A stretch of DNA of 32,994 nt from Lenisia limosa (taxonomy: Eukaryota > Protista > Breviatea), in contig LPNZ01003103.1 of assembly GCA_001655205.1 (NCBI GenBank), forward strand, positions 1 through 32,994. Direction: 5' to 3'. This document shows, one piece after another, positions 3,781 through 20,217 of this stretch; positions within the stretch are counted from its first letter, which is position 1, and each line of letters starts with the position of its first letter. The notes below the pieces were generated by a model. It saw nothing but the letters and a program-made list of their open reading frames with translations. It had not been told where the DNA came from and ran no database searches. Both the position numbers and the translations under genes were made by a program.

Positions 3781-6700
3781 CTACCAAGCGCGGGTGGCCC
3801 TATACGGCGGCGGCTTGAGGTCACGGGACGGGGGGAAGGCACTTGGGGGGAGGGCCGGACGCTTGTGGGGCGTGGCCCCGGTGCGGAGTGAGGACATTGA
3901 AAGGGGGCGTTCTAGGGTGGAGCCTCCAACTGCAATGCAGCCTTGAACATAAAAGTGGAAGGTGAACAATGTGAAACAAGGAAGAAACGAAAGAGGCAAA
4001 TGTGAAAAGAAGAAATGAAAGCAAACCGGAAGCAACAGCTGAATCTCTTGCTATGGATCTTTGCAGCGTTGGGCGCGGGGCAAGGCTTGAGAAGGGGTCA
4101 AGGGGTCGCGGTGATGGCTCGCGAACTGGACGTTGTCGGGTGTCGGCAGTCATACGGAGGGTTGTAATGGCATCCTGTGGGTAGTGTTAGCTTGACCCAA
4201 ACTGGTGGTTCATGTTAGTTTCGGTACCTTGAATTCGGATGTCAGCTTGTCGGTCTGGTTTCGCGCCTCCTGGGCTTCGGAACGCCAATAGTGGGCCTAT
4301 CATGGGGGGGAGAGGAGTTAAAAAGACTCGTGAAACGCAATAAATCGTATTCAATTCTGTTGGATCTACATTTGAACATGAGAGAGGTTTGAAAACAAAC
4401 AAAGCCAATTGGCATGGTCGAAGAGTTGAATAAGAGTAGAGGTGAAAAATACGAACCTCATTTTCGAGATTCTGGCGAGACGGTGACACTGATGCAGCAA
4501 GGGACGACCTTCTATAGGGATCAAAGGAGGCTGTGTGTTTGGGTTAGTAATAGAAATAGTCAGAATCCTCCAAATAACGGTATTATCTGTAATATTAAGG
4601 CCATTTTATTTTATAACGAGAGTCGTAGGCATGCCATACCGGTGCCTTGATACTGGGGGGCCCGAGGGCGGAAGCGGCGCCATCAATCGATCCACTACAG
4701 TCTCCTGGAGGGGTAAGTCACGTGGATGTGGTTGTAAGGAATAACCGAGCCTACAGCTTCTTGAAGCCTGTCAGCCGCCTCGTGAAGAGCTGTGGGGTGA
4801 GATAACAGAAGGATATCCGTCTTGAGACTCTTGTGGAAGTCGATGACTTTCAGAAGAAAAAACGTGTCTGTCTGCCTACTTTCCTCGGTCATTTCAGCCT
4901 CCTTGGTTCTCAGGGCAACGAAGTCATTTTGCAGCTGCTCAATTTCCGCTTGGAGCGCCTGAAGGTGAGTTAGGAACCTGGCGTATCCCACCTCTACAGA
5001 TTGTTCGGCAACACCCAGCTGTAGGTCCTTCACCTTCAGCTCGGACGCCAGGGACTGGTTCAACATTGCTTCCTCGTGCAAACTGCCGGTTAGAAGGTGG
5101 TAACAAAATTGCCTAAAAATCATTCCAAACTATTCTGTCCAGGTCGTCAGAGGCAGAAAAAGAATATACTTTACCATGATAAAATGTGAGCTATTGTGTC
5201 AAACCCCATACTGGGCGTTGAGTTCTCTGACGTCAGCCTGCAGGTTGGCAAGAGCGTCTTCTTGGTCCTGGGTTGTGATAACAGCCAAACTTATCACGCC
5301 TCACCTTGACTACGTTTTTGAGGCGCGCTACAGCCACTTCAGCTTCCTCTGAGATTCGGGCCGCCTGGAGGGGAGGGGGGGGGGNNNNNNNNNNNNNNNN
5401 NNNNNNNNNNNNNNNNNNNNNNNNNNNNNNNNNNNNNNNNNNNNNNNNNNNNNNNNNNNNNNNNNNNNNNNNNNNNNNNNNNNNNNNNNNNNNNNNNNNN
5501 NNNNNNNNNNNNNNNNNNNNNNNNNNNNNNNNNNNNNNNNNNNNNNNNNNNNNNNNNNNNNNNNNNNNNNNGTCCGCAAATCCAATATTATATGTAAAAC
5601 GAAATATCGGGGTGGGTGGCTGAAGAACTATCAGGAGGGCCCACCCCTCTGTTCCTACAAATGGATGTCTCAGAACTCTATGATAGCGAACCCCTACGCA
5701 CCTGTACCCTCTGGACGGCGTGGTCCAAATCAGCCTCCAAAGTCGTTCTCGCGTCCTCACCATCCTTCAACGCAAGTTCCAACTGCATGATCTATGGAGT
5801 GACGGGACTTTCTCTGGTACGAAAAGCTTGCAAATGTCCAGAATTATCACAAACGATGGAAAATCTGTCTTTTATTTGGAAACTCCACCTCCCACTTTGC
5901 GCAAAGCCTCATCTCTATCAGCCCTCAACGCAGTGGCCTCCCTGAAAGCCTGGCGACTGGCCTGGCGCTCATCAAAACTACAGAGTTAGAGTTTTTTGAA
6001 CAGGAGAAATATTATGCCTTAGAAATCAGGGAAATAAATAAATACATGGGGGGTGAGATGTTGATAGGGCCAGGGGGGGGGGGGGCNNNNNNNNNNNNNN
6101 NNNNNNNNNNNNNNNNNNNNNNNNNNNNNNNNNNNNNNNNNNNNNNNNNNNNNNNNNNNNNNNNNNNNNNNNNNNNNNNNNNNNNNNNNNNNNGATAGTT
6201 ATACATATGATATATCATCTAAAGATATGTAATATTGGTGCATATCATCTGTTGACCCCAAATATTAGTTCCAACGAGCCGCCAACCGGGCCGTGGTCGC
6301 ATCATGAGAGAAGGCGCGGGCCTCCTTGAGTTGCGCCCGGGCCTCATCAAGGTCACGTGATAGACTGTCGCTTCGACGCTCGGCAAGTCGTTGTTTCTGA
6401 TTGTCAATAAAGCTCTTTTGCTGAAGTTCACAAAAACTAGAATGCAAGTGACTATGGAGCAAACAGCCCCCTCAATAACGCAGCAAACCCTGATTGAAGC
6501 GTCGCGGTCGGAGTATGCCACTTCCTGCGCCTCAAGCGCGGCCGACAGTCGTTTGGAGAGCTCCAACTCCCATGCGCTTTCACCAGGTGCCGTCGGGTCC
6601 ATAATAGCGGTGGTAGTAAGGGGGACCTAGGTTATTAACAACAAATTCGACCTGAGCACGATCACATCAGCTGTACCCGGATAGCTCACCGAATTCAAAG

Positions 6701-9700
6701 CCTCTCGCGCGCGTTGCGCTGACGCCTCTGCTCTCCTCACATCTTCCTGTCCATGTAGCAGCTGAAGCTTCAACTGGGCCACTTGAGTCTCAGCCTCCTC
6801 AGCTCTCCGCACGGCAGCCAAGCAGTCAGCCTTCGCCCCTGCTGTTTGTCCATTGGCTCGGTTGAGGTCCTCAGTGGCCTGGTCAAGCTCGCGGAAGGTC
6901 TCGTCAAGTCCGTCGGCAATACGGAGGAATGACGTGGCACTGCGGTTAATGGACACCGGAGACGCCCGGGGCGACTGGATGGGGGATACATGCGGAGAGG
7001 ACGGAGCGGAATTAGATGGGACGTGATCCTGAAGCTGAGGGGTTACATGAGGTAGACTACAACAAAGCATAAAAATAAGCTCTCTGCACACTATTCTGGT
7101 ATTATATGGGCAAAATAATAATTATTATATTTTATTTGTATATATAGTATTTATGTACTATGTATATAATATAGCTACTATGTATGGATAGGTTACAAAA
7201 TGTGAATAGTAATGAGTATACAAATAGAAGATTCTTTAATCTTTCAAGGTTTTTCATTCAAAAACTAGAGGCATATCAGACCCGTCATTACACACCCTGG
7301 TCACCTCAGCCTCAAGAATTTGAATGTGTTTCGCCATTTCGGCCTTGGCCTGCTGGATCTCATCCTGTGCGGTAACAGCCAGTTATAGTGTGGAAAGACT
7401 GTTGTCATCCCCCCTCACCCTTTCAGCAGTCAAGGCCTCCACCTTCTTGTTCGTATCGATTAGGTCGCCTTCAAGACTCTCAATTTGCAGTTCGAGATCA
7501 TCAAGTGACTAAAGTGTGATAATGCCTGACAACAGAGGGTTTATGACCTGGACAATGCTGATAGAATTCAAAAAAAGGCTTACTTGTTGAATGACAACAG
7601 TTGAGGAGTTCAATTGGGCCTTGTCCTGAGCTTGGGTGGCAAACTTGCCGGACATAGACTCAAGCTGGGTAGTGAGGCAAGGTGAAGTGGAGGTATGATG
7701 CTATATATACTATACACATGTCAAGTTTGACGCATGATATGGATGGAGATGGTGAAGGCAGAGTCCACAAACCTGGCTGACAAGCTCCCTTTTCTCCTTG
7801 CTGACGGCGGTGTTGCGCTTTGACAGCTCACTTGCCCATCGGTCAGCCCTGTCAAGCTTGTCATTGAGACTCTGAACTTCGCCTTGAAGTGCATCAATCT
7901 CTTTTGTTGAAACGCGGTTTCGTTTTCTCTCTGATTCAGTCTAAATGGTCAAAGGGGCTTCAGAGCTGGGATAAATAGATAGCTCCAAATGCACGGCTCA
8001 CCAAATCGGTCTGTTCAGCGATTTTTTGTGATGAAAGTCGGTATTTTTCCTCTGCAGCAGACAAATCGGCTTCCAAACTAACGACACGACGAGAAAGAGC
8101 CCTACAAGTGACATTAGCTCAGACTCATGGGTACCCACTGTAGCTGTTCCGATGGTTCACCAGCAGTAGAGAGGTTCAACACCGTGGACGCTCCATTCTT
8201 GAGCTGGTTTGTAAGAGAGCGGCAGTGGCTTACACTGTCAATTTCTTCACGAAGGTCCCGCACGAGTTCTCCCAGACACTCCAGGTCGGCTTCCGACTCC
8301 TCCCGTGTGGCCTAGTTGATGAGAAGAGCAAGGGGTGCAGATCGACAATACAAACAATCCTTAAATGAAATCAGAGTTAATTTTCCCTATGTCCGAACAG
8401 AGCTTGAGGCCTAGAAGAAGCAGTACCTGGTGGGCAGTACGCTCGGCAGCCAGGAGAGCCTCCAAACGTTCCACTGCCGCAATGTCTCCGACGGTGGCCT
8501 CAAAACCTGTTTGTTAGAATGCCCGCTTGTTGGTATACACGGTTTGCTAGAATGCCCTAAGGGGTGCCTACCAGTCGTGGTTTCAAGACCATTGGCGGGC
8601 TCAGGGCGGGCTAAAGGGAAAAGTTGGTATCAAAAAACAAAACTAAGAAAGGTCCAAAAAAACTGAATTGTATTGATAACCACACAATTGCAGGATATAA
8701 GGTCTGACTCACCACCCACGGATGTACTGAGGCGGACCCTCTGACGGTTCTTCTGGGCACGCACTCGGCAATACGGCCCCGTGCGCAGTACCAAGACGAA
8801 TATCAGGCCCAGCCTGGTCATCCAGCCCTTCTTGCTTCTTGAATGCCGGGACAGTCGGGCCAACTGACTTCCCGGACCGCATCTCGTCAAGCTGCGTCTG
8901 GAGGGCTTCAGCCTTGTAACGATACCTTTGCGTTTCAACGCGAGCCTCGTCCAAGTCACGTGTCAGAGCCCGCCTTGTGTCAGTCCATTGCGTCTCTTTG
9001 TCACTGAAGAAGGCCGCCCTTGACGTCGCTGCCTCCTTCATTCGGTTGATGGTTTGGTCCATTCCTGCCTTCAGCTCGGCTCTGTCCTCGACGCCCGCCT
9101 GAACAACCTTCTGCGTGCGATCCAGTTCACTTCGAAGTTCCACTTCCAACAGTTCCGAGGCACGGATTTGGGCCTCTAAATGGCGAATACGCCCACGAAG
9201 CTCAACCAAGGCCGAGTCATCAACAGCAAGGTTCGGCGGCGAGGCGGCTTGAGCAGACAACGACGTCACCTTGGCTCGGAGAACGTCCCCTTCCGCCACC
9301 GCAGATTTAACCCTCCGCTGCTGCTCCTTCAACTCGGCCACGAGCTGGCCAACTTCGGCTGCCTGGGCATCAAAGCGGATCACGTGCTGCTGGACCTCGC
9401 TTTTAAGTCGCGCAATGGTGTGTTGCGCAGAACGGAGCTCGACACGCGCATTGTTTGCGTCCGCTTCGAAGACCTGAGAGTCGAGCATGGCCGGGTGTGT
9501 GGTGTTGCGAATAATGGGCTGGAGTGTGACATCGGGAGCGAAGGACTGCGAAAGGCGTTGTGCGTGACGTAAGTCTTCAACGTGCTGCCGATCCTTCTGA
9601 AATGTGTGAGACAGGACGAAAGAGATATGAGATAATATTAAGGCATACCTGGAGATGAGCCCGCTGTAACTTCGCCATTGCGTCATCAGCAGCCTCAATT

Positions 9701-12700
9701 TGTGATCTCAGATCTTCCTCCCTCGCGGCGGCGGACTGAAGACGATCGCGCAACTCCCGAACTTCTTGGCTCGCAGATTCGTGTTCTCGAGCAATTGTTG
9801 AACGGAATGCAGAATCCTAAGGGTGTCATAAGGAAGAAGGTTATTAGCCAAAAGACCGATGGTTGGTAGAAAACTTTAAACGAAAACCCTGGTTTAGTTC
9901 ACTGCCCAAAAAATTGAACATAGACATACTTCATCATTAGAGTTGGAGAGCTGTTGTGATAATCGAGCGATTTCGGCAGAGGCAACAGCCTGGTCCGCTA
10001 AGGTTGATGCTAGTCGATTCTCGAGATGATGCAGGGATGCTCGATGGGCCTTCGGGGTCAATAAGTGCGGATGTGAGATTGTAATGACTGGTCAATAAGT
10101 GCGGATGTGAGATTGTAACGACTGGTCAATAAGTGCGGATGTGAGATTGTAATGACTGGTGAAGTTAAGGAAGATGAGGACAGCAAGGTATAAATCGCCT
10201 ACTTTATCAGCGTTGTCTGCTGCCTGGTTGAGTTTTGATACTGCAAGAAGCTTGTCCTAAAATGTTAACCCACATAATCAGAAAATCCTACAAAGGATCA
10301 TGGTGCTAACCTCGGCAATTTGTGCGATTTTGACTTCCAGGTCCCGGATAGTCTTTCGAGCCTCTGCAAGCTGAGTCTGAAGAACGTCGGAAGCGGAAGC
10401 GGAAGAGCGGCGGAGTTCGGCAAGAGAAGCTTCTGACTCCTTCCGACCCGAATCCAAGCCTGCATTGAATCCCTCATCACGACCCTTCCTCTGCCCAATC
10501 TCTTCGCCCTCCCGCCTACCTTGTTCCCTCCCAACGGACCACCCAGCCTTCCAGCCGCTGTCACGACCGTCAATATGGCCCTCATCTTTGCCGGTACGGG
10601 ACCCGGCAGAGAAGCCGTCACGCCACCCTGCCTCGCGCGCATCTTGCGCGGCGCGTCTCATTTCAGCATCCGTGACCATGCCTGGCCGCGCCGTTGTGGA
10701 GGTTAACATGGTCATGTCGTGTCTCCGGTTGTAGGCACGGGAGGCTTCCAGCTGCCTCTCCAGCTCGTCAGCGTGGCGCAAAGCGTCACGGCATTTCGCG
10801 TCACTGTTGGCAGCTTCGCGCTCAAAAGTGGCGCGTTCACGCTCAAGTCCTGCAGCAAGTCGCCTCAACTCATTGTCGCCCTGAGTGGTGGATACTCCGG
10901 TTGCCGGCCCGGAACTGACCAAGGTAGATAGTGACGAGGCCCGGGACTCTGCGGCGGCGGACCGTTTCTCAGCCGCCATGGCGCGGGCGTCGGACGCAAC
11001 AAGTCTGGCTTCCGCCTCGGCTAGTTGCTCAGTGAGTCTGTTGTCGATCGGTGGCGGGATGGGAGACGGAACTGTTTTGGCGGCGGAAAGGTCGGAAGTG
11101 AGTCGGGAGTTGGCACCCCGGAGTACCCGGATCTGGTTCTCGAGATCTTCAAGATCTGCGGTGTCTGTCTGAAGCTGTCGCACCTAGGGTGTTAGAGACC
11201 TGGGGGAAGGAACAATACACCCATACAGAGGTGAATATACAGTCATATAACACCCCACACACACATACATTATAGTATACTATGATACATTTATACTATG
11301 ATATATTATATACGTATTATTATATACATACCCACCCACCTGTCTTTTGAGCTTGCTGTTTTGCGTTTCCAAATCAGCAATATCGTCTTGGAGCAATTCG
11401 TTCTTATGTTGAAGTCTCAAAAGAGCGGAATCATCTATGATGATAATTAAAAAACAAAATTCTTGTGGCCCTACCTTGAACAATTGCCTGCGGTAGCGGA
11501 GGGGCTTGAAGTTGGACCTGGTTCCTTGACACTGCAAAATCGTTCAGATCTCGGTTCCGAATGGTTTCTTGAAGTTTTGAGAGCTCATTCTCCATCTTCG
11601 ATGTAGACGCCCGGGCATGGGTATGCTCTTCTTCCAACATTGTGGCGCGAGATTGTGCGTGAGCCTCTGCCAACTTCGCGTCATGAGCCTGAACTCGCGC
11701 TGCCTCAAGGTCGGCTCGGAGTTTTGCAGCCTCTTTCCGGGCTTCTGAAACGCTTTTGTCATTATCCGCCCGTGCAGACTGAAGGGCCACCTGGGGGGTT
11801 AATCATCCAATTTCTTCCATTTTGCCGAAGCAAATATGTGTGTAATATATCATCAATACTATCGAGGATAACCTGCCAGTTTCAGTAAGAACTGAAGGCC
11901 AAACGCGAGCAAATAATAGGCTTACCTCGAGATTATTGACCTGGCCTCTCAAATGGTCTTCAATTCGCGAGTCCTTCGCCAAGGCTATCGTGTGAGATAA
12001 GAATGAAAACCAGCTATTGCCACTAGCCCTCAAAGAGATGGAACTTAATAAAATCCCGATAAACCATTTTCCCAGCCTTTTATCAACCACAGTGAAACCT
12101 TACTTACTACCCGACATGGCTGATAAAAGTGTACTTTCTTGCTCCCAAAAAAGACCTGCCATACCACCAACCCACCCTGTGCGGCGGCGAGGTCGGCCTC
12201 AGCAGCAGCAGCACGGCCACTTGATTCGGCAGACTTCTCGAGGGCCTCGCTGAGCTGGTGGCGGAGATTGGCCACTTCTGTCGCACTGGCTTCGTGCTGG
12301 ACCTGAGAGGTGAAATGATTGCTATGCGAGAATGCTGGGTGATGTTGTGTGATTGAGCATTGCAGTTTTGGATGCCGCACCTTGAGAGAATGAAGCTGAC
12401 CCTCGGCAACCGCCTTTGCCACCGTCACAGATGAGAGTGTGGTCTCAAGCTCTGCCAGCCGACTCTGAGCGGTCAACACCACAGTTGTGCAAATAAAAAA
12501 AAAGGTCCCAGAACACAAGGTTTCGCAGAGAGAAAGCGCAACCCACTTCGTCAGTTGACCTTTGTGTGCGGTCTAAAATTCGAGCGTTCTCAGCCTTAAG
12601 CATAAGAGGACCAACAAGGAACAAGGATTAGTAGAGAAACAGACCTGAAGGGCTTCAGCTGTTGCAGAGGTCATTGCAAATTCGACTGAAAGTTGGCTAC

Positions 12701-15700: not shown

Positions 15701-18700
15701 GACTTAACAGACTGGATTGTAAGGAGGAGGTACGTCACAACGCTTACCGGGGGATTGGAGGTTGGCTTCTTTTTGGTCATAAACAGCCCGTCCTCACTTT
15801 CTGCAACATGACAACGGAATGACAAAAGATATCAATAGGGCTTCCATTCGGTCCGAAAATGACCATTTACACATGTTTATCGAGGATTTATCGAGATATT
15901 CGGGTTTTTTTGGTACCTTAGGGAACCCCCAGTTATTAAAGATTACTTACCGCTAGAGTTGGCATCAAAGTCACTAGGTTGAATGCTGATGTTGCTGACC
16001 ACCGACTGCGCAGACGAAATGTTAGGTTGGGGCAGTGCTGGCTTCTCAGATGCACTAAAAGGTTAGAGTCAGGAGGAGACACAAGGAATTTATACTATTA
16101 GTCCATAGAATACGCCACTGACACGGACATTGAGTTTGACCGTGGCCTTGACTCATGACTAGTTGAGGGTTTGAGGGACTTCGACTGGACCGTAAAATGA
16201 AGTCAACATTTAACGATATTGAGAAATATAACGATTTCAGATTCACAAGCGTCACCAACAAACACTGTCCCTTCCCAGAGTGGATGAGGAACAAGCCTAT
16301 CCCCCCCCAAACGAATTCTGAGGCGTTTCTTGTCAGCGGAGCCGCGCGGGCAGGCTGAGCAATAGGCCCCATGGCCGGCTTTGAGAGAAGGCTCGGCCTA
16401 CACTGTCACAAAAAGGGTCACGTGCAGCTTGGTTCTGAGAACGTTTGTAGTTCTTCATATTCGCTTTTAAAAAATAGCAATTTTTATCTCAAGGATATGC
16501 TGAATACCCACAAGCCCATTTTTAGTAAGCCCTTGATACATCTGAATGGGCTGCGGCGCTGTAGCAGGCCGGTCAGTCTTGTCCTTAGTCTTCAGTTTAC
16601 CGGATTCAGAGGATTGAATTGGCGCTGGAGCAAGTACACTGAAATATCAAAACAACAGACAAACAGACACGGGTAGTAATAAGCAACAAAGGAGAAACAA
16701 AATGTTTTCCCTGAAGCTTCTTATTGTTTCCTTCTGTCCCTAACAACGCTGTATGAAATAGGCGAACCACACGTACTTTGTTGTGACAGCCGTCCCCGTG
16801 ATAGCAGTCATTTGAGGCGCTTTAGCTGCGGGCTTGGAAGGGCCAAACCCACTAAATGAATTGCGGCGCTGTGCACCAAACGTTGGAGCAACACCAACCT
16901 TGGAGCTTAATAATTTGTCATGAAGGAACTCATGATTGTATTTAACATCTGGTGGGATCTGCCAACCTTGCCTTTTTGGACAGGTTCCTTTTGAATAACC
17001 TCCTCCGCCGCCTTGAACAGATCGTCATCACTCGAAAAGTCGTCCACCTCGAGAGCCACTACAGGTGTGACGTTAGCTGCCGACTCACCTTCCTTCTCCT
17101 TTTTCTTGGGCTTGAAAGTTGGCCCAGCATTCTTCTGACTTGAGAGGGCAGCAACAGCCTCCTGTATGGCTCCTAGACTATGCGGATGGCCAGCAGCTGC
17201 AGTAGGCTACAGGGTTAGTGATATCACAAGAAGAACAAATCGATAAACCCTGAAGCCCTACAAATGTCCAATCCGATTCATGTGAACCCCTGTAACCTGG
17301 GTGGCGGGCTGACTGCCATGAACAGGAGAGGGAGGGACTGACCGCGTCACTAAACTCAAGGAACCGTCAGCTGGTGGAAGGGTTGGCTCCCTGTACAGTG
17401 AGGGTCATTGGTGTGATGAGGTGCTTTACAGTGAGGGAGTGATGAGGTGCTTTACAGTGAGGGTCATTGGTGTGATGAGGTGCTTTACAGTGAGGGTCAT
17501 TGGTGTGATGAGGTGCTTTACAGTGATTGACTTACGTGCTATTTGCTTCATCATCCACGTCTAAGATGGAGACCTCATCGGGATCTGAAGAGTTAATGGG
17601 GGGAAAAGGTCAGGGTGACGACTCACCTTCAGGAATTGGGGAGGCAGCGAAGTGTTTGGAAGAAGTGCCCATTTGTTCGATTGGATTGATAGTCATTGGC
17701 CTCTGCAAATGAAACAAATGTTGGAATTAAGCCTTCCAAAAAGGACACATTTATAATACGATACACCTACAAATGTTCCAACCCCATCCTAATTGACAAA
17801 TTGGTTAGCTTTCTCTCCAAAAGTCCCACCTTGTGTACTGGAACTGGGCTGTGGCCTGGACCTTTAAACCTCTTCTGAGGCTCGGTGGTTGCGCGATCCA
17901 CAGCTGCAATATTAAATCAAACACCACAAATGAACACTTCATCGCAAACCAGCAAGAAACCATAAAGTATCAAAAGTAATAACAATAACTGTTTTCCATT
18001 CAGCCCCTCACGAGTGGACGATCTTGAGCCAATTACAGCATCACTGAACTATTAACAATCGATAATCATCATGAAACATTTCACATAAAAAAAACAGTGG
18101 TTGAATCGTTACCCCCCCCCCCCNNNNNNNNNNNNNNNNNNNNNNNNNNNNNNNNNNNNNNNNNNNNNNNNNNNNNNNNNNNGGTTGGGCGCGGTGATGG
18201 TGGTGGCCTACATCAATGATGACGAAAGGAACGGCAAGGTTTTTCATTTCCCAATTGCTGCTCACCTTCCAGTCACAGTTATTGCCAAAGGTTGCTCAGT
18301 TGAGGAAAATTCGGTTTCGAGAGCTGAAATTGTTAGCGCACAATCTCATATCACAAGATGTATCAAAGAAACAATAAAAGGTTCTAGAAAAGTAAAAGAT
18401 CATATATGATATATTAATTCACCCAATCATTTGCCTTACAACTCTGTGCACACAGCTTTCTGCGTGCCTCCAATGCTCATAATAAATATCCCATCGCAGA
18501 CCCAGTTTCGGAATATCCTTCTCATTTCTCCGTTGGGGCATAGGCGACTGCGGGACTGGTGTAAAAGCTGACACCCTAGTGGACCTGCACTGTAAGTACC
18601 AAGAATGGCAAGAACGCTTTAGCATGAAGCAAGGCCTACACAGGGGTCGCGGGCACCAGATCATCGGGATCGTCGCCAAAGATACTTCCAACAACGGAAT

Positions 18701-20217
18701 GATCCAACGTAACCGATAGAAGTGGATCAGCAACTACCGATGTGTTCAACGGTGGCGGGGCGTGTGGGGTGTCTTCTTTGGCTTCTTCTTCTTTCTTTTC
18801 GCGAGCCTAGGGTATCAAACGTTATTGAAGCAACAAAAAGGTAATCAGAATATTGCTTATGCAGCTCAGGTTCAACTCACCTTGAGTTCTTTTTTAAGCA
18901 TGTTTACGAGAACAGGTTTACTTGTTCCAAGAGCATGATCCATCGGCTTTCGGTTCTAAAAGATGAGATAAATCTGCAGGAAACTGTGAGTGGTATTTTG
19001 ACATCATTGTCATTCACCTCATTATCTAGAATGTCCAGATTGACAGGAAATTCCAAAAGGACTTTCAGCGCCTCTTCGTGACCCTTATGGCAGGCGTAAT
19101 GCGTTGGTGTTCGACTAGGCAAATCAGCAGCAGCAAATGCCAGATATTAACAACAAAGTTATCCCAGTGCAAACTTAGCATTGTCAGTGACGTTGATGTT
19201 TGCGCCTTTTGTAATGAGAAATCGGGTATAGCGCTCGTAACCAAGATAAGTCGCCCAATGAAGCGCCGTTCTGTGATAGTAATGTTTCCGTTTATTATTA
19301 TCTGGACAGCAACCACAGGGTTTTTAAGATCCTAGTTTTAATGAAGACTGTACAATGATAAACTATTTCCTGACCGCTTAGAAGAAAATATGTGAGAGAT
19401 CAAAAAGATATAACAACGTTTGACGAGGGCTTTTCCTTGTCCTACCTTCCCTCATGGTCCTTGGCCTCGAGGTCAGCCTTGAAGTCAAGCAGGATACTTG
19501 CCGCCTCAGGGCAGCTCAGCGATGCGAAGTGCAGTGCTGTTTAACTTAGTAATCCAGAATCTCATTTTTGATTGTTATCATCAAAGCGTTAGAAGCTCAC
19601 GGGTCCGCTTTTCGTTATCAACTGCGTTAATCTTGGCGCCATTTTTAACGAGAACCGTTACAACATCCAATTTGCCTTCAGAACATGCCGTATGCAGCTA
19701 GATTCCGTTAGCAAACTAAAACTTGCCCATAATATGTATCAAGACACAGCATACAGGAGTTGCGCCAGATTCGTCCTTGAAGGCCTTGTTAGCCCCCATG
19801 ACACAGAGGAACTCCGTTGCCTTCTCATGGCCTGGATGTGAATTACCACTCTTCCGAAGAATCAATTCATCATACTCATTCCCAGCATATTTCAATAATA
19901 TAATAACAGGATAGTGAGAAAATAAAAGGAAGTGTGAGTGAACAAAACTCAAGAATAAGACATTACCTTGCTTGGCAGCATAGTACAGGGCAGTCTTCCC
20001 ATGTGAGTCCTTTAAATCGACATCTTCTAGTGTCGCATTACCTTTTTCTTCGAAATACTGTAAAGCGTGGTCAGAATACCAGTAAAGAGGACTCAGGACA
20101 CAAACCTTTCTGAGACTGGCGACGTCCCCTTCAAAAGCATACTTGTGAATGAGTTCATTATTGTTAAACTTGACTTGATTTCCCCCCTTTTTAGCGAAAT
20201 TTCCGGAAAAATCCCAT
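3781..20217 (-). CDS. Giant ankyrin-repeat plus coiled-coil protein (ankycorbin/UACA-like architecture), dozens of exons
   Basis: GT-AG exons chain wherever I checked phase. Six ankyrin repeats plus a cap come first (e.g. GKTALYYAAKQGHEKATEFL, LHTACSEGKLDVVTVLVKNGAKIN, TALHWATYLGYERYTRFLITKGANIN). A Ser/Pro-rich region follows (~18800-15000), then heptad-rich exons (8709..9698, 10278..11183, 6627..7091 etc.), ending at ...PPYRATRAW* (3781). No terminal exon or new promoter was seen internally. Three N-gaps prevent full verification and the start is ambiguous. Confidence 0.75.
10057..10160. repeat. Intronic tandem repeat, 34 bp x3
   Basis: GTCAATAAGTGCGGATGTGAGATTGTAATGACTG three times with one substitution, no spacers. 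Confidence 0.97.
10437..10652 (-). repeat. Coding period-4 glycine array AxxxAxxxG(xxxG)15
   Basis: AAQDAREA-GWRD-GFSA-GSRT-GKDE-GHID-GRDS-GWKA-GWSV-GREQ-GRRE-GEEI-GQRK-GRDE-GFNA-GLDS-GRKE in ORF 10278..11183. Glycines run from 10628 to 10446. Confidence 0.95.
17395..17526. repeat. Intronic tandem repeat, 33 bp unit, about 4 copies (one shortened to 26 bp)
   Basis: ACAGTGAGGGTCATTGGTGTGATGAGGTGCTTT at 17395, 17454 and 17487, a shortened copy at 17428, and a partial copy at 17520. Confidence 0.97.
18415..18471. repeat. Dispersed ~55 bp intronic element, copy 1
   Basis: TAATTCACCCAATCATTTGCCTTACAACTCTGTGCACAC-AGCT-TTCTGCGTGCCTCC. Differs from 29745-29797 by 2 substitutions and a 4-nt indel. 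Confidence 0.93.
18860..20160 (-). other. Ankyrin-repeat domain (6 repeats plus terminal cap) of the large gene
   Basis: TPLH/TALH-type motifs recur about every 33 aa across 7-8 small exons, roughly one repeat per exon. Confidence 0.92.

Follow-up and report, generated by a model that had tools for sequence, protein, structure and literature searches.

Yae1 and Lto1 are adaptors for the insertion of iron-sulfur clusters into Rli1/ABCE1, and they bind both Rli1/ABCE1 and the iron-sulfur targeting complex. Formation of the Yae1-Lto1 complex is abolished when glycines are replaced in the central or the C-terminal portion of the Lto1 motif (PMC4523923). In an AlphaFold 3 model that pairs Lto1 with the fission-yeast Yae1 domain, two helices intertwine and the glycines make up a continuous interface (PMC12810181). 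In general, small residues spaced four apart allow close approach and right-handed crossing of two helices (cited in PMC4523923). A bacterial counterpart is provided by FliH. This protein is dimeric, and its glycine repeats have been proposed to mediate helix-helix dimerisation, with position x1 contacting the partner helix (PMC2674601).

Here, we describe an array of this type in a protist gene. The window, meaning the whole stretch of DNA that was analysed, is 32,994 nucleotides of Lenisia limosa. Translation of a minus-strand exon identified 16 glycines at exact period 4 (residues 186, 190 and onward to 246), spanning 61 codons. Two alanines, Ala178 and Ala182, precede the array in register and Ser250 follows it. 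The array and its exon are positioned as follows.

10311..11183, minus strand: array exon of 873 bases and 291 codons, phase 0 at both ends (from splice sites and frame).
10446..10628, minus strand: core array, 16 glycines at period 4 (from translation and shuffles, with no repeat at the DNA level).
10434..10652, minus strand: extended stripe of small residues, AxxxAxxxG(xxxG)15xxxS (exon residues 178-250).

The sequence-only reading had claimed this pattern, together with divergent underlying DNA and spacer triplets that are charged or aromatic. All three descriptions hold. In the exon translation, no glycine between residues 186 and 246 is out of register. The triplets named (WRD, FSA, KDE, REQ and FNA) are present in the array. 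Trp, Phe, Leu or His occupies x1 in 7 of 15 units, while Arg or Lys is found there in 5. At x3, 12 of 15 units have Glu, Gln, Ala, Asp, Ser or Thr, and 7 of the 15 have Glu, Gln or Ala. The array follows the FliH-type form, AxxxG(xxxG)n with an aromatic residue or Leu at x1 and Glu, Gln or Ala at x3, though it is more charged (PMC2674601). It also has the defining feature of GX3 repeats: at least 10 glycines at exact period 4, separated by non-repetitive spacers.

Chance arrangements fall short of this length. The longest period-4 glycine run was 5 when the protein encoded by the whole exon was shuffled 20,000 times. Shuffling the 61-residue segment, one quarter of which is glycine, gave a longest run of 10 in 200,000 trials. 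No second comparable period-4 glycine array was found in the six frames of the whole window. At the DNA level, Tandem Repeats Finder detected no repeat inside the array. Apart from the glycine codon, the 12-base units share 30% identity, and that codon appears in all four GGN forms. A recent microsatellite origin was rejected on these grounds. Hence, the period-4 pattern is a property of the protein and not of recently duplicated DNA. Since the DNA has no repeat, the period must be kept by selection on the protein.

We compared the array exon with known families using hmmscan and the whole of Pfam. The only motif-type match was Yae1_N (PF09811), at residues 198-235. This scored 15.6 bits (E = 0.013) and is sub-threshold, the family cut-off being 27.5. 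The scan, which retained matches with E up to 1, found neither FliH nor the HrpE/YscL/FliH/V-ATPase subunit E family in the array exon. V-ATPase subunit G was covered by this whole-Pfam scan alone. Similarly, the FliH (PF02108) and HrpE/YscL/FliH/V-ATPase subunit E domains are absent from nine other open stretches of the gene. Of the profiles that had been suggested for comparison (FliH, Yae1_N and V-ATPase subunits E and G), Yae1_N is thus recovered, but below its cut-off, and FliH and subunit E are not.

An exhaustive HMMER search of 1.84 billion representative proteins took as its query 131 residues with the array at their centre. There were 600 matches at E≤1e-3, 27 at E≤1e-10 and one, the exon itself, at E≤1e-30. 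The matches cover essentially the array alone (about query positions 21-90), and no protein in this search also matched the array flanks. All 149 matches listed besides the exon's own carry a period-4 glycine run of at least 5. Arrays of at least 8 units have, among the matches listed, a median of 16 units and a maximum of 92. Tyr accounts for 46% of x1 positions among the matches; the array described here is more charged than typical arrays and has fewer Tyr or Phe residues at x1.

We then scanned the 96 nearest sequence neighbours for domains. Yae1_N was matched (E≤1e-3) in 90, and three, whose arrays have 33-37 units, are true FliH proteins. The domains that co-occur with the arrays in these 96 proteins include BspA-type leucine-rich repeats (6), phage tail-tip domains (6), FliH (3), GAF (2), an AIG1 GTPase (1) and several others. 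The matches are united by motif and not by common descent, with identities of 30-40% that derive mostly from the glycines. By features, the nearest ESM Atlas clusters consist of Basidiomycota Yae1_N proteins; their value of 0.86 falls short of what would make them more than a lead. The structure rows of the same resource all had TM scores below 0.55 and were unrelated. A Protein Data Bank sequence search returned no solved long GX3 helix. Only low-complexity sequences were matched, namely a Gly-x-Pro-Ser-type repeat and the Glu/Gly repeat of Plasmodium P230. Together, the comparisons support assignment of the array to the FliH / Yae1-Lto1 class of GX3 glycine repeats, the class being a motif and not a homologous family. 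The FliH/Yae1-like label originally given to the array was therefore well chosen, given Yae1_N in 90 of 96 neighbours and three true FliH proteins among them.

What might such an array do? An α-helix has 3.6 residues per turn, with residues four apart offset by +40 degrees. Sixteen positions free of side chains would thus line a continuous right-handed groove, turning ~40 degrees per unit, so that ~90 angstroms of helix hold about 1.7 turns. Another helix bearing the same stripe could pack on this groove at very short distance. We estimate that 40 degrees per 6 angstroms, with an inter-axis distance of ~6.5-7 angstroms, would give a crossing angle near 40 degrees. Right-handed GxxxG helix pairs are known to cross at such an angle. 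The right-handed stripe that the sequence-only reading derived from the period of four is thus soundly reasoned, and it agrees with the AlphaFold 3 model of the Yae1 domain and Lto1 (PMC12810181). We infer that the array forms a helix with a glycine face and that this face packs tightly against another helix of the kind, most probably the equivalent segment of the other chain in a dimeric rod. On balance, we judge this interpretation somewhat likelier to be right than wrong. The rod would otherwise be a dimer of heptad type, and at the array its two chains would pair tightly and, locally, in a right-handed manner.

The identity of the partner deserves separate consideration. The most likely candidate would be the identical segment on the second chain. 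In a parallel dimeric rod, the sister chain's array presents the nearest matching stripe and is the most concentrated partner, so self-pairing is favoured. Alternatively, the array may serve to dock another GX3 protein, such as the organism's own Yae1/Lto1-type adaptors or some other partner. The sole eukaryotic GX3 pair to have been studied experimentally is indeed a heterodimer (PMC4523923), and a Yae1 domain can remain functional in fusion with an unrelated enzyme (PMC12810181). The occurrence of GX3 arrays in many unrelated architectures is also what would be expected of a portable pairing module. However, the window contains no second array, and FliH, whose arrays are closest in length, is a homodimer (PMC2674601). 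Hence, we consider docking of a different protein possible but unlikely.

We examined the predicted fold of the array exon using AlphaFold2. With the exon alone, helices were predicted at residues 3-37, 48-90, 100-161, 172-191 and 219-300. In this model, the first half of the array (residues 190-219) was coil with pLDDT below 50. When an alignment of 110 array segments was supplied, a single helix was predicted for residues 172-289, with a mean pLDDT of 90. The aligned segments are analogous arrays and not orthologues, and the result reflects how the class behaves in AlphaFold rather than providing independent evidence. A hairpin of the array on itself was supported by neither AlphaFold2 run. 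According to these models, AlphaFold2 treats the GX3 class as helical, and the helix may run straight into the downstream coiled coil. Two features adjoin the array.

10671..10700, minus strand: non-helical linker (residues 162-171) containing Pro and Gly, low-confidence coil in both AlphaFold2 runs.
10311..10445, minus strand: helix running unbroken from the array into a heptad-like coiled coil (residues 247-291), from AlphaFold2 with the alignment.

The downstream helix has a hydrophobic periodicity of 3.5-3.7. The array had been described as flanked by heptad helices. This is upheld by a flanking hydrophobic periodicity near 3.5, but needs amending just upstream of the array helix, where the short non-helical linker intervenes. 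In our favoured arrangement, the pairing segment would be decoupled on its upstream side by this short flexible linker and would merge downstream into ordinary coiled coil.

The coil in the single-sequence prediction could mean something else: the array would be a bend point in the rod, mostly disordered or marginally helical, acting as a hinge or spacer with no specific pairing. Glycine reduces helix propensity, the ESM Atlas model of the array exon is also poor (pLDDT 0.58), and further short breaks were predicted elsewhere in the exon from the single sequence (residues 38-47 and 91-99). Yet a hinge would work without exact register, and here none of the 16 glycines departs from it and no further glycine intervenes, even though the DNA has diverged. 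Moreover, the spacer preferences fit those of helical FliH-type repeats (PMC2674601), and AlphaFold2 with the alignment predicts the whole segment to be helical with high confidence. A hinge is, in our assessment, quite unlikely, and we retain paired glycine-faced helices as the preferred explanation.

We also considered the coding context of the array. The minus strand is open for 301 codons at 11183..10281. Within this frame, the array exon is bounded by the acceptor CCCTAG upstream and the donor GTTAGC downstream. The putative gene around it and the ankyrin repeat upstream lie as follows.

11340..11434, minus strand: preceding exon of 95 bases, coiled-coil-like and in frame with the array exon (from splice sites and frame).
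11184..11339, minus strand: upstream intron of 156 bases, GT..AG (from splice sites and frame).
10257..10310, minus strand: downstream intron of 54 bases, GT..AG (from splice sites and frame).
10256..10203, 10049..9930 and 9816..9649, minus strand: three following exons, phase 0 and coiled-coil-like (from splice sites and frame).
8712..9596, minus strand: next in-frame open stretch, 295 codons and coiled-coil-like, after a GT..AG intron of 52 bases (from frame).
18907..19146, minus strand: ankyrin repeat, upstream (Pfam Ank, 26.5 bits against a cut-off of 21.1).

The three following exons measure 54, 120 and 168 bases, with GT..AG introns of 153 and 113 bases between them. In all, six consecutive GT-AG introns surround the array (40, 156, 54, 153, 113 and 52 bases) and one frame is kept throughout. 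GC content is 0.40-0.61 in the exons versus 0.30-0.44 in the introns. The exons around the array are rich in Ala, Glu, Arg, Leu and Gln, and several of their helices have a hydrophobic periodicity near 3.5. Runs of N interrupt the whole 16-kb span. The sequence-only reading had placed the array in a coiled-coil giant. The six in-frame GT-AG introns and an ankyrin repeat on the same strand fit this description, but a single gene spanning 16 kb stays putative. On sequence grounds, the array is a real coding feature of a predicted coiled-coil-rich gene.

Relatives of the gene were sought with its exons taken singly rather than joined as a spliced model. Word searches, covering proteins of 0.55-1.75 times the query length, found only the query itself, both for the whole array exon and for the next large open stretch (8712..9596); longer relatives could be missed. 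The library of 1.84 billion proteins contained no transcript-derived protein with the array segment. Neither the word searches nor the exhaustive HMMER search turned up an orthologue. The array exon occurs on one other contig, from an ENA metagenome, that is 100% identical to the window. This contig is the same organism or assembly and offers no variation for a test of selection. That the array is in no protein that is made, because it lies in a pseudo-exon, is read in another frame or belongs to a decaying gene copy, is very improbable: two other frames across the array are also open and the length-limited searches brought up no relatives, but the 301-codon open frame has canonical, phase-preserving splice sites and runs on through five further exons, and a strict period in the protein with no repetition in the DNA is hard to explain without selection on the frame.

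Coiled coils adjoining GX3 arrays are found in other lineages. In XP_076855441.1, from the knifefish Brachyhypopomus gauderio, an AIG1 GTPase head is joined to a long Glu/Lys coiled coil, after which two arrays (14 and 19 units) follow directly. In the ascomycete Melanomma pulvis-pyrius, KAF2787770.1 has ~330 residues that are coiled-coil-like by eye, followed by arrays of 14, 6 and 11 units; UniRef names it a Yae1 N-terminal domain-containing protein. Since these proteins exist, neither the motif nor its coiled-coil setting is unique to the gene described here. Our literature searches found no experimental study of the fish or fungal protein and no paper describing the combination of coiled coil and GX3 array. 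Searches for a structural account of the FliH glycine repeat as a coiled-coil dimer, and for other uses of PF09811, yielded nothing relevant to coiled-coil scaffolds. The suggestion that a GX3 repeat in such a scaffold was new is weakened: public databases already hold fish and fungal examples, but no paper describing them was found. This is a known, little-studied and widespread motif in a new host protein, with a plausible mechanism and limited novelty.

For the gene alone, the implications are modest: one more rod-shaped protein would have a known pairing motif built in. The wider point is more useful. A 131-residue query led to 600 protein clusters with very different architectures, including eukaryotic coiled-coil proteins. 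Relative to what is stated in the two papers describing them, long GX3 arrays occur far more widely and grow much longer. A bolder proposal is that GX3 repeats are a general, portable helix-pairing code used across life, and that the array recruits GX3 proteins, possibly Yae1/Lto1, to a cytoskeletal scaffold. We regard this as decidedly unlikely. If true, it would run counter to published opinion, which restricts the motif in eukaryotes to Yae1 and Lto1. The proteins that such a code would span are FliH, phage tail tips, bacterial surface proteins, fish immune GTPases, fungal proteins and protist rod proteins. In practical terms, a soluble 16-unit array that runs on into a coiled coil would serve conveniently as a model peptide for the structure of a long, soluble GX3 pair.

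Comparison with the described systems places the array as follows. The deca-GX3 motif of Yae1 and Lto1 is, like the array, eukaryotic and built with glycine at every fourth residue. Both are predicted to be helical, the array when AlphaFold2 is given the alignment. In both, an aromatic or basic residue follows the glycine, and the residue ahead of the next glycine is acidic or small. Unlike the 10 units of Yae1 and Lto1, there are 16 here, and the Yae1_N score is below the family cut-off. Yae1 and Lto1 are also small adaptors (140-230 residues) with the motif at the N-terminus, whereas the array sits in the middle of a long coiled-coil protein. Lto1 has, in addition, a C-terminal Trp. At least 185 residues lie upstream of the array in its own exon, with further exons on both sides, so neither small size nor N-terminal position applies. 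Because the Yae1_N score is sub-threshold and the architecture is wrong, the protein is not a Yae1/Lto1 orthologue. The window contains no link to iron-sulfur assembly.

FliH and YscL/SctL, the stalk proteins of type III export ATPases, share the AxxxG lead-in and have similar preferences at x1 and x3 (PMC2674601). In these proteins an array of variable length lies inside an elongated, helical, dimeric protein. The rod described here would share this design, a dimer being its probable state. Unlike FliH, the protein is eukaryotic, lacks the FliH C-terminal domain and has no ATPase partner in view, and the similarity is confined to the repeat. Given that the FliH domain is absent, it is not a FliH/YscL protein. 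The fish and fungal proteins are alike in that a long charged coiled coil adjoins GX3 arrays; they differ in their head domains and lineages, and have no detectable similarity outside the array. Finally, the packing principle is that of glycophorin-type GxxxG pairs between membrane helices. Those pairs use 1-3 units on a hydrophobic transmembrane helix, whereas the array has 16 units on what would be a soluble, highly charged helix.

All six introns flanking the array of 16 period-4 glycines (window positions 9597-11474) are canonical, with GT..AG boundaries and lengths of 40-156 bases; no intron of 21-34 bases ending in TG has to be invoked here. Features in and around the array exon, and the gaps in the putative large minus-strand gene, are as follows.

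11183-10311, minus strand: array exon (873 bases)
10628-10446, minus strand: glycine array
10388-10405: perfect hexanucleotide repeat, (CGGAAG)3
10202-10050, minus strand: intron, two exons downstream of the array
10056-10160: 34-base unit present 3.1 times (97% identity)
about 5340-5570, 6030-6190 and 18110-18170: runs of N

The hexanucleotide repeat falls in the array exon, a short way beyond the 3' end of the array; read on the coding strand, it specifies the Ser/Ala run that follows 'ELRR'. The 34-base repeat lies within the intron. Translated in the wrong frame, it yields a repeated peptide. Hence, raw translations could mislead. The putative large gene is broken up by the three runs of N. 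An ENA metagenome contig (L001), identical to the window, carries bases in place of the first two runs.

Proteins matching the array were identified by HMMER, using a 131-residue query centred on it. Four bacterial matches (P0005, P0085, P0088 and P0120), one of them from an Acidobacteria genome, have a common design. It combines a helix at the N terminus with a GX3 array (19-56 units), a GAF-like domain and, at the C terminus, a conserved helical domain. These proteins appear to be an uncharacterised family.

Among the eukaryotic matches is an AIG1/GIMAP-type GTPase with a long coiled coil, from the fish Brachyhypopomus gauderio (P0056; XP_076855441.1). Here, a module of coiled-coil tail and GX3 array is present in duplicate, the arrays having 14 and 19 units. 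Literature searches turned up no report of such arrays in GIMAP-like proteins.

Three further matches (P0037, P0048 and P0143) are true FliH proteins, as defined by the Pfam FliH domain. Each contains 26-37 consecutive GxxxG units. A 2009 survey of FliH gave m = 12 as the maximum for the repeat; the runs in these three proteins are well beyond that value.
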